DNA of 63,306 bases, the filler included, from Olpidium bornovanus S191 (Eukaryota; Fungi; Olpidiomycota), in assembly GCA_017911155.1 (NCBI GenBank). It is 33 parts of 33 records of this genome, joined end to end, with 100 filler letters (N's around TTAATTAATTAA, not from the genome) between each part and the next. Parts side by side here need not be neighbours in the genome. Positions count along the whole stretch, not along the records: positions 16,293 to 17,710 come from JAEFCI010001051.1; 32 more parts are not named here. One strand, written 5' to 3'. The notes below the pieces were generated by a model. The model worked only from the letters and a program-made list of their open reading frames with translations. It had not been told where the DNA came from and ran no database searches. Positions 15,853 to 19,201 of the stretch are shown in pieces (positions within the stretch are counted from its first letter, which is position 1; every line of letters begins with the position of its first letter). The position numbers and the translations under genes are program-made.

Positions 15853-16616
15853 GTGTGTGTCCCGAGGGTTTTCCGAACAAAAAAGAAGAAAACAAAATAA
15901 AACGTCGAAAACGCGAACGCGCCACTCTGCCGTGTCCGAACGGAGCGAGATTCTTTTCTCTCTTCGGGCGGAAAAAAACGGAAATAAATAATTCTGCCGG
16001 ATAAGTTGCAAGCATCTTCTGACGCTGGCACTCGGCTTGCGGAATTGGCGTATTTCTTTTCTCGCCCCTCGCATGCGACTTTTTCGGGATGACAACACCC
16101 GCCGCGGCCAATTCTGGGGTTCAAACTTACAGCGAATAGGAAAACCGGGGGAAAAAACCCCCCAACACATTACCGGCAAAATTTCGTAAAACNNNNNNNN
16201 NNNNNNNNNNNNNNNNNNNNNNNNNNNNNNNNNNNNTTAATTAATTAANNNNNNNNNNNNNNNNNNNNNNNNNNNNNNNNNNNNNNNNNNNNTCCATGCC
16301 CTGCAAACGGAAAGGGGGGGGGGGATAAAAAGATAAAAAACGGAAGAAGAGGAAGAAAGAAAAAACCGGCGGGGAGGGGGAAAACAAAACGCGAGGTCAG
16401 CGGTTTGCGGGGCGGGTGGGAGTTTTGGCGAGTTCCGCGTTTCTTATTTCTCTGATTCTCTTAGAAACGTGGCTTTTTCTATATAGTTTTTTTGTCTTAA
16501 GAAGAAAAAAAGGAACAAAAAAATTTGTTTTTTTTTTCCGATTCTTGAAGTTTTTCCTTCCCCCCCCCGCTTTTGGTCTTATCTGCACGGAAAACGCCGG
16601 CCGCCACATTTGGTAC

Positions 16617-17258
16617 CTCGGACATTTTGTCCCACAGCTCTTGGAAGCCGTTTGCAAAGACCTCAATTTTTCCCTGGCAGGTTTCGATGAATTTCAGGAA
16701 GTACGCGGCGGGAATGTCGTCGTCCAGGTACCCGTACCCTGCGGAGGTGTAGGCGAGGTACCAGCAGTCCCCGACATACTCCATGTCCCTGTCGCGCAGC
16801 CACTGGCGGATCGGGGCGGCAAGCTCGACCTCGCTGACGGGCCCGTGGCCGGCGCAGTCGACGCCGCGGAAGGCGGCCTCGCGCTTGTCGTAGTAGTCCT
16901 GGATTCTGGGCATCAGGCTGGCGTAGAGGGCGATCATGTCGTTGTCCGGCCGGGTCTCGAGGTAGCGGCCCGTGTCGAAGTCCAGGATCCGCCCGCGGAA
17001 CCGCGCAGGCTCGACCCCGAACTCCGCCGCGAGCGCCGCGACCGCGCGGTAGCACGGGCTGATGCACACGGCGCCCACGTCGTACCGCCGGCCGTCGACC
17101 TCCACCGTCCCGGACTTGCCCGCCACGCGCCCGCCGGCCTCGAGGACCGTGACCCGCGCGTACCCGGCCTTGCGCAGGAAGTGCGCCGCGCACAGCCCGC
17201 CCGGCCCGGCCCCGATGATCCCGATCCGCGTGCCGCTCCGGTCGTCGTCGACCGTCAT
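16617..17258 (-). CDS. FAD-dependent oxidoreductase/isomerase (amine-oxidase fold), PAI (polyunsaturated fatty acid isomerase)-like; 3' end unresolved
   Basis: RIGIIGAGPGGLCAAHFL...VTVLE...RVAGKS..VEVDGRRYDVGA, and TSAGYGYLDDDIPAAYFLKFI...FANGFQELWDKM; uninterrupted for about 214 codons, then a possible GTACCA donor at 16616. Confidence 0.85.
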
Positions 17259-19201
17259 TTTTTCTGGGGGGTTTTTCTCTACGCGTAACCGGCGCGTCCG
17301 TGCGCGTTGCGCCCGGTTTATTGGCGTGTTTATTGGGGGAGTGGGCGTTTAATGAGGGCGGCGGGGTTTGGCGATTGGCGGGCAAAATTAAACGCGCAGA
17401 CCAACGTTCTTGCGGACGGCGCCGGCCATCGGCGCCGGGCGGTCGATTCAATAGAAGCCGGGCGGAAGGAAGCGCGCGACCGTGACGCGAGCGCACCGCG
17501 GGAATATTTGTTTTTTTCCCCCCAAAAGACGAGCACGGCTGTCCCTGTGCCGTCATCAATTAGCGTTTCGTGGGAGGGTGCCTCCTCCCCATGTTTTCAT
17601 TTCGTCCGAGAGAAAGATGGAAATGTGGAAACCAACAAGCCTTTCATCGTTTCGAAGTGGTTAATCTTGACGCGTTTCCCATTCGCTTCTCTTCAGCGGG
17701 AACTGGAAAANNNNNNNNNNNNNNNNNNNNNNNNNNNNNNNNNNNNNNNNNNNNTTAATTAATTAANNNNNNNNNNNNNNNNNNNNNNNNNNNNNNNNNN
17801 NNNNNNNNNNGCCCGAGAGTTTGTTTCCGCTGTAAGCTGTGCCCAAGAACTTACTGTCTCGCCTCCTGGAGAACCAATGAAACAAGCAGAGCTTTCCCCT
17901 CGGTTTGGCCAAATGCCTGTTGCGCCTCATGTCTTCGCTCAAAACCGGCCCTTGTTCTAACACCCTGTTAACCGTAGAAGATCCATGTGGTGACTCCGGG
18001 TCTCCCTAACTCGGCTGTGCGCACGTAAACGGGGTAAATCTAACGTAGCCATTTCACAACAAATAACAGGTTATGCGCCCAACCGGACACCTTTGTCCCT
18101 GAGCGCAAAAGCAGGCAGGGGGCGAACGCGGCCACCGTCCGCCGGAAGCGCACGCTGCGCGGAGCGGACAGAGCGGCGCAGCAAGCATCTGGGCCACGCG
18201 TACCGTGCTGTTGCGAGAAAAAGGGGAGAAGAGGGAGGGAAGAGTCAAAACAGCAGAGCGTACAAAACTACACAACAAAAATCCAAGAATAAAGGATAGA
18301 ATTCCAGATCGAGAAGACCGGGTTGTTAAGCCCCTATCCCAACAAGTCGCCGGTCGAATGCGTCAAGGCCCCCAGAAACGGTGAGACGCTTCCAACCCCC
18401 GAAAACTCGTGGCGTTTCCCGAATGTATCACGTAGCGCAGAAACCCCGTAGCGCAGCAAAAACGAGAGGAGGTCAAGAAAGGAAGACATTGAGAAGCGTC
18501 GGGAAGTGTCTCGGAGAAGAGATCGTGGCCTCAAATGCGGGCAGACGAAATCAAAAGGAGTGGAGGCTAAAAGTCGGATTCTGGCAGTTGAAGTCGCTGT
18601 ATAGGAGGGAGAACCATCCACAAGGCCCGGCGCTGCTTGCCTTTAACTACCCACCTATATTTTCCCAAACTTTGGCGCTCGGGCAGGAGGACAGTGAGAA
18701 ATTTTACTTTTTACTAAGCGGCGAAAGTGAGTGTGGTAAAATGCTCGGGAAGAACAACGTGTGACGAGCCGGCAAAAGGAATGATGGCAACAGTTTGAGA
18801 CGAGTGCGAACGGCCAGGTGAGCGAATGCGGCAAACGTCACAGCGGCGGTTGATCCGACCGGCGTAACGTGGCACCCTCTTGTGTGGAGGAACTTTTTTT
18901 GGCAGCTCAAATACCATTTAAAGAGTCGCTCCGGAAGAACGAGATGCAGACGGCGCCGCGATATCTCCTGATGAAAGCANNNNNNNNNNNNNNNNNNNNN
19001 NNNNNNNNNNNNNNNNNNNNNNNTTAATTAATTAANNNNNNNNNNNNNNNNNNNNNNNNNNNNNNNNNNNNNNNNNNNNCATGTATACAACTAAATGTAG
19101 TTGGGGGATATTGCGGGAGCAAAAAGGGGGGAGAAAAACAGAGGAAAAAAAACGGGGGGAGGTGCAAAGTACAAAAGAAAATTCCAGATCGTGGTGCTCG
19201 T

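Follow-up and report, generated by a model that had tools for sequence, protein, structure and literature searches.

The first exon of a PAI-like gene is related to the N-terminal domain of Glomeromycota NRPS-like FAAL proteins and shares an intron position with them

A first exon that resembles a bacterial flavoenzyme, in an assembly filed under a fungus, raises the question of how the gene came to be there and what kind of protein it belongs to. The initial annotation of this locus proposed a stand-alone linoleate isomerase of the PAI type and a candidate for horizontal acquisition from bacteria. By the window we mean the whole stretch of DNA presented, 63,306 nucleotides in length; the sequence that we analysed is the piece at positions 16293-17710 of it. 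Its features are listed here by window position (X1 and X7 are sequencing runs).

16293..16300, minus strand: the 8 bases at which exon 2 starts, where the piece ends; continued in frame by the X1 contig
16301..16616, minus strand: intron 1, 316 nt, GT...AG, phase 0; joined form in the X1 contig, unspliced form in the X7 contig
16617..17258, minus strand: exon 1, start codon at 17258 and 214 codons, which cover the first half of an FAD-dependent, PAI-like domain, from the open reading frame and its translation
16689..16748, minus strand: family signature TSAGYGYLDDDIPAAYFLKF, residues 171-190, which aligns with PAI TAFGYGHFD-NVPAAYVLKY
17196..17225, minus strand: dinucleotide (FAD) binding motif IGIIGAGPGG, residues 12-21, at which the Pfam Rossmann-type models start; equivalent to PAI residues 9-18
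17259..17267, minus strand: start of the 5' untranslated region, agreeing with the transcript contig (X1 contig match)
17268..17710, no strand: upstream flank, presumably the promoter region; 56% GC, CpG observed/expected 1.47, no X1 coverage

On the minus strand, the ATG at 17258 is the first start past an in-frame stop, and 214 codons run from it to 16617 without a stop. The reading frame remains open down to 16497; homology stops at 16617, in the sequence GAG/GTACCA. Pfam recognises in exon 1 the Rossmann FAD/NAD motif (NAD_binding_8, E 1e-13) as well as the beginning of the flavin amine-oxidase family (Amino_oxidase, E 6e-12), while NCBIfam gives weak N-terminal matches only and an ESM Atlas feature search returned generic amine-oxidase clusters only. 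An AlphaFold model of exon 1 alone, built from a 12-row alignment, reached pLDDT 40 and was set aside as unusable for fold search. In the upstream flank no gene was recognised and an Rfam scan found no RNA family; Rfam and tandem-repeat scans of the piece as a whole returned nothing relevant.

Among all solved structures, the best relative of exon 1 is Cutibacterium acnes PAI (2b9w, E 6.8e-22, residues 9-205 aligned to PAI 6-205). The next structure is putrescine oxidase, which matches in its FAD-binding part only (E 3e-10), a gap of some twelve orders of magnitude. The PAI motifs that the initial annotation had named are all present in the 2b9w alignment (riaiigagpag, ggk, grryemga, tafgyghfd-nvpaayvlky and wadgt), and FANGFQELW, the counterpart that it had quoted from the window, is located near the end of exon 1. 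The orthologue from Rhizophagus irregularis aligns with PAI over the full length (residues 13-434 against 3-423, E 4e-38; next PDB match 2e-5). Judged by these alignments, exon 1 encodes the FAD-binding half of a domain that, as in the R. irregularis orthologue, is probably homologous to C. acnes PAI from end to end, and it falls in the PAI branch of flavoproteins with the amine-oxidase fold. The two domains have the same fold family, the same motif order and the GxGxxG FAD-binding motif in common, although identity is only about 30%.

We mapped four sequencing runs onto the piece. A contig of 3,533 nt from run X1 (depth 57) covers 16616-17267 and, past exon 1, reads ...GATGTCCATGC, which with the next base corresponds to 16293-16300; that is, 16301-16616 are absent. 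The donor GTACCA at 16616/16615, which the initial annotation had put forward as possible, is therefore in use, the contig joining 16617 to 16300. The intron that it removes is of low complexity (45% GC) with many homopolymer runs, and its acceptor is TTTGCAG. Past the join, the coding strand continues in frame as G-M-D-I-R-F-N-Q-R-A, position by position like the start of exon 2 in R. irregularis, N-L-N-V-I-Y-N-S-K-V. Within the exon, contig and piece differ at one site, 17052, a synonymous third position.

The label of run X1 as RNA is a guess; its depth pattern (57 on the exon, 3.7 on the intron, 0 on the flanks) fits RNA. While a processed, intron-less DNA copy would also yield the joined contig, the depth pattern argues for RNA. 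A 2012 run under organism label B (X7) contributed an unspliced contig of 527 nt, at 16528-17054, which spans the donor and is 100% identical to the piece. Two large RNA-seq runs from 2026 that carry the same organism label as X1 had essentially no reads in the 6% that we sampled, which is too little for a test. We conclude that the gene is expressed, spliced and eukaryotic, and is not a bacterial contaminant. On the PAI-like flavoprotein, its uninterrupted frame of about 214 codons and the donor that would mark a eukaryotic gene, the initial annotation was correct. Beyond 17267, the X1 contig departs from the piece: it has 13 A and then CC where the piece has A5 C6, followed by 107 unlike letters. 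This mismatch could be a difference in homopolymer length or between strains, an assembly error in the piece, or an intron in the 5' untranslated region.

What kind of protein does this exon begin? By local phmmer, the nearest relatives of exon 1 are the N-terminal domains of Glomeromycota proteins of about 1,630 aa, which are 47-50% identical to it and score 181-212 bits, against 106 bits or less for all other proteins, bacteria included. A word-index search placed two partial Glomeromycota proteins at the top (Acaulospora morrowiae, 49%, and Racocetra persica; both species are represented here only by partial proteins of about 200 aa), followed by Streptomyces and metagenomic proteins of about 430 aa at about 35%, and an exhaustive search brought up further, long proteins that have the domain embedded in them. 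Members of the family are mostly 1,614-1,665 aa in Gigaspora, Dentiscutata, Cetraspora, Acaulospora, Diversispora, Rhizophagus, Ambispora and Paraglomus, the gene models of Funneliformis (1,871 aa) and Entrophospora (1,948 aa) are longer, and the family was found in every sampled Glomeromycota order. According to Pfam, their architecture is a PAI-like flavodomain, an AMP-binding domain with a DIP2-like AMP C-domain (a FAAL, or fatty acyl-AMP ligase), two PP-binding domains and a thioesterase.

Exon 1 aligns with 11 Glomeromycota orthologues nearly without gaps, with two small indels. In this alignment, 7 of the 10 residues of IGIIGAGPGG are invariant and I15 and A20 are nearly so, and TSAGYGYLDDDIPAAYFLKF is the block of highest conservation in the clade formed by Glomeromycota and the window. 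The relatives are the 'NRPS-like FAAL' proteins (Gigaspora margarita KAF0481106.1, P0178; the 1,637-aa R. irregularis protein, P0194), which also have the same intron 1 and a homologous start of exon 2. Crown Glomeromycota members are 61-92% identical to each other over the N-terminal 460 residues, and the window lies outside that crown. According to Koczyk et al. (PMC8070225), FAAL clusters occur in no Mucoromycota other than Glomeromycotina and are bacterial-like in their Alien Index, and KAF0481106.1 has been described as an NRPS-like gene of unknown product that starts with an acyl-CoA ligase (Venice et al., PMC7732545). Both papers list the protein as an 'NRPS-like' or FAAL gene only and make no mention of an N-terminal PAI-like flavodomain.

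Neither the word-index nor the exhaustive protein search found a protein identical or close to that of the window. Among JGI metagenome contigs, a protein scan found no relative of the window's own lineage, and an alignment scan found one AT-rich Glomerales-like contig and none of the window's lineage. One JGI contig of 1,530 nt (metagenome 3300078620) carries a 168-aa open reading frame (P0217) that is exon 2 of another divergent family member; it is 52% identical to R. irregularis residues 220-384 and ends at the Glomeromycota intron-2 site. It is unlike the start of exon 2 in the window, which indicates that at least one further unsampled lineage carries the gene.

The close relatives of exon 1 are thus all N-terminal domains of long PAI-like/FAAL/ACP/ACP/TE proteins, and the proposal of a stand-alone linoleate isomerase finds no support. 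The transcript contig also speaks against it, since 2,774 nt of it lie beyond exon 1. Were this stretch colinear and coding over its whole length, it would end near codon 1,139, just behind the point where the orthologues have their first carrier-domain serine motif (residues 1,104-1,126). An end inside the duplicated carrier region fits, since short-read contigs tend to break there, and the end of the X1 contig is, by inference, consistent with the layout of the megasynthase. We consider it likely that the gene is a sister, and probably an orthologue, of the pan-Glomeromycota megasynthase described as 'NRPS-like FAAL', that the rest of it encodes the second PAI-like half, a fatty acyl-AMP ligase, two carriers and a thioesterase, and that the module came from bacteria before crown Glomeromycota. 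The ligase, carrier and thioesterase domains would lie downstream, off the piece, as predicted by orthology.

The intron bears directly on origin. We mapped the gene models on their contigs and compared intron positions; intron 1 is at the same codon and in phase 0 in R. irregularis, Paraglomus brasilianum, Ambispora gerdemannii, Racocetra persica, a Glomerales-like metagenome contig and the window. The two bases that flank the site are as follows.

Window, 16617/16616: intron 1 site
L003, 3654/3655: intron 1 site
L004, 3639/3640: intron 1 site
L005, 3618/3619: intron 1 site
L001, 3396/3397: intron 1 site
L006, 1064/1065: intron 1 site

In each case, intron 1 follows directly after ...W-x-K-M-x-[EK], at residues about 206-220. 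The residues that precede it are DFWSKMSK in R. irregularis, KLWEKMVE in P. brasilianum, ELWEKMMK in A. gerdemannii, DFWIKMAK in Racocetra, WTKMSK in the Glomerales-like metagenome contig and ELWDKMSE/GT in the window. A spliceosomal intron in common with Glomeromycota rules out an independent bacterial acquisition by this genome. In the R. persica orthologue (CAJVQC010025462.1, L001:3170-3260), we noticed a short deletion and a frame change inside exon 1. The deposited Racocetra model spans the deletion with a 73-nt 'intron', and the locus may be a pseudogene or contain a single-nucleus assembly error.

We built two trees, one of 87 rows and a careful one of 45 rows. The clade of the window and Glomeromycota has support of 98 in the former and 99/94 in the latter. 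Glomeromycota without the window are monophyletic (99 and 100/99, respectively), and their internal order follows the fungal orders. AU tests reject trees in which the window nests with Glomerales, Diversisporales and Entrophospora, with Paraglomus or with Ambispora (p 0.0003-0.001), with composition strongly unequal between the window and the arbuscular mycorrhizal fungi (AMF). As far as these sequences tell, the window groups as the sister of the Glomeromycota, which are monophyletic, and lies outside the sampled crown. Several AMF rows of the trees were flagged as compositionally deviant, and the extreme GC3 and GC-driven amino-acid make-up of the window could distort its position.

The nearest branch outside this clade, weakly supported, consists of domains embedded in bacterial megasynthases. 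Bacterial proteins from Archangium, Polyangiaceae, Byssovorax, Saccharopolyspora and Streptomyces have the same domains in other orders: A, Ox, ACP, TE in Archangium and Polyangiaceae, and Ox, ACP, TE in Saccharopolyspora. They differ from the mycorrhizal proteins in that the ligase comes first or is missing and in that there are no introns (Archangium WP_407755965.1, Polyangiaceae MCU0655709.1, Saccharopolyspora WP_358617264.1). Bacterial megasynthases are 26-31% identical to the R. irregularis protein over the whole flavodomain, and the best bacterial domains are 36-46% identical to exon 1 of the window over about 185 residues. Given that megasynthases of myxobacteria and actinobacteria contain the same set of domains, and given the Alien Index report (PMC8070225), it is plausible that the module is of ancient bacterial origin. 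The whole module probably entered eukaryotes from bacteria before crown Glomeromycota diverged, rather than recently into this genome.

A simpler history would be that this genome took a stand-alone PAI-type linoleate isomerase directly from bacteria and gained an intron afterwards. PAI is indeed the best solved relative, single-domain bacterial homologues of about 420 aa are abundant, and the best bacterial domains reach 40-46% identity. The Glomeromycota domains nevertheless score twice as high in a nearly gapless alignment, and the intron's position and phase are common to four AMF lineages. The start of exon 2 is homologous too, the transcript contig far exceeds a gene of 430 codons, and the clade of the window and Glomeromycota is strongly supported. 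Taking both sides together, we judge a direct acquisition to be highly improbable. For this genome alone, which is sister to a pan-Glomeromycota clade with the same intron 1, the bacterial transfer proposed by the initial annotation is not supported; it is plausible only in the ancestor from which all members of the eukaryotic clade descend. That annotation would have given up its proposal had the gene nested within a broadly distributed, vertically inherited fungal clade. The close relation to such a clade, the Glomeromycota, is borne out; nesting in its crown is rejected by the AU tests, the window being sister to it.

In composition, exon 1 stands apart from its mycorrhizal relatives. Its GC content is 0.69 and its GC3 0.93, in keeping with the GC-rich codon usage that had been noted, and GC3 declines along the exon, being 1.00 in its first 75 codons and 0.70 in the final 30. 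G- and C-ending codons are both common (e.g., GGG 13 vs GGC 10). AMF orthologues have GC3 of 0.19-0.52, and their intron 1 is 82-187 nt long compared to 316 nt in the window, where CpG is undepleted as well. The P. brasilianum orthologue (L004:3001-3639) has the richest exon 1 among the AMF examined (GC 0.49, GC3 0.52), above the GC3 of 0.19-0.40 in R. irregularis, Racocetra, A. morrowiae and A. gerdemannii, and composition therefore varies widely in the family even among mycorrhizal fungi. On composition we weighed several kinds of source, among them one with a grass-like GC3 gradient, GC-rich algae and early-diverging fungi, and claim none of them. The source could be an unsampled sister lineage, an old eukaryote-to-eukaryote transfer, or an associated organism in the samples.

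In the second of these cases, an organism that is neither a glomeromycotan nor closely related to one would have received the gene, intron included, from a mycorrhizal lineage that is either a stem lineage or unsampled (or would have been the donor itself), for instance through cohabitation in roots or soil, and the gene would since have become GC-rich like its recipient. The differences in GC3 and intron length could be explained in this way, as could the report that Glomeromycotina alone among Mucoromycota have the FAAL gene (PMC8070225), the presence of the sequence in root metatranscriptomes and soil metagenomes, and the fact that protein searches returned no orthologue from other named eukaryotes. 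However, composition by itself does not show transfer, the AU tests (p ≤0.001) mean that the transfer would be old or its donor unsampled, and vertical descent with loss explains the data equally well. We regard such a transfer as unlikely.

Alternatively, the 1.4-kb contig could be contamination from an associated, unsequenced eukaryote in the samples rather than part of the labelled genome. It is a very short contig, its protein is absent from all protein collections searched, and the two large RNA-seq runs that bear its organism label had essentially no reads in the part read. Yet under organism label A the sequence is present in runs of at least four studies (P1, P2, P4 a small share), the 2012 run under label B has the 527-nt stretch at 100% identity, and, according to the initial annotation, codon usage is like that of the other pieces of the window. 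Contamination of this kind seems to us quite unlikely. Our preferred reading is still that of a sister, and probable orthologue, of the Glomeromycota megasynthase.

For this megasynthase, the domain order suggests a load-modify-release cycle. The ligase would adenylate a long-chain fatty acid and load it onto a carrier domain; the PAI-like flavodomain, through FAD, would shift or introduce double bonds (isomerise or dehydrogenate) in the tethered chain; and the thioesterase would release the modified acid. The logic would be that of bacterial FAAL/ACP/desaturase/thioesterase cassettes, with a flavoenzyme replacing the desaturase. In the JamABC alkyne/polyyne cassettes, which together with a thioesterase are described in PMC8406139, the fatty acid is likewise activated, held on a carrier, altered in its double bonds and released by a thioesterase. 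These cassettes consist of separate proteins, however, and their modifying enzymes are membrane di-iron desaturases rather than flavoproteins, with no sequence relationship for the modifying step. The isomerase activity of the window-family proteins is putative.

PAI itself is a free-standing protein of 424 aa that acts on free linoleate, whereas, by orthology, the window domain would form the N-terminus of a megasynthase of the carrier-protein type. In PAI, Arg-88 and Phe-193 presumably hold the free carboxylate at the entrance of the channel; these roles reportedly go back to Liavonchanka et al. 2006. The window has an Arg within one position of PAI Arg-88 (two HMMER alignments disagree by one residue), and the aligned Arg is replaced in Gigasporaceae and Acaulospora, so that it is not conserved across the clade. 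The loop of Phe-193 is six residues shorter in the window. A carrier-bound substrate would not need the carboxylate-gating residues of PAI. As possible functions, the initial annotation had put forward the making of conjugated fatty acids or the modification of host oxylipin precursors; as substrate, an acyl chain on a carrier is likelier than a free fatty acid.

Arbuscular mycorrhizal fungi are unable to synthesise long-chain fatty acids and depend on lipids from the plant. A megasynthase conserved in every sampled AMF order is a candidate for the processing of host lipids, and it is unstudied. With the window, the family gains an expressed and divergent relative, from a genome of very different composition; it thus reaches beyond the sampled fungi, and the window provides an outgroup for dating the module's entry into eukaryotes. 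It is tempting to speculate further that the gene resides in a GC-rich organism that is not an AMF, the megasynthase having either predated Glomeromycotina or moved with its intron between root and soil eukaryotes, and that the PAI-like domain represents a flavin isomerase or desaturase of a new, carrier-protein-dependent class, making conjugated or rearranged lipids from plant-supplied fatty acids. We consider this combined proposal unlikely; if it is true, the rearranged lipids may act as symbiosis signals. The locus also illustrates that, from a first exon alone, a correct likeness to a bacterial enzyme can mislead on both origin and architecture.

Plant proteins of 2,300-2,400 aa (Reevesia pubescens REPUB_Repub05bG0102300, P0204, and a 76%-identical protein from a metatranscriptome, P0202) are colinear with the mycorrhizal protein over the PAI-like domain, the ligase and the carrier. 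They differ from it in having extra hexapeptide-repeat and catalase-like parts, and identity is about 30% over roughly 1,250 residues. They are farther from the window than the best bacterial domains are, and they have no intron at the window's site. We considered and rejected a place for the window in this plant PAI-like/FAAL family, given its identity of about 30% to the mycorrhizal proteins and its introns elsewhere; the family is also not among the best 150 matches of exon 1, the weakest of which scores 71 bits. The Reevesia gene (CP140576.1, L007:4001-12298) has 7 exons and 41% GC and lies in an 81-Mb chromosome record beside an Rcd1-type gene, and two JGI contigs (L008 and L009) look like full-length mRNAs of the 76%-identical plant homologue.
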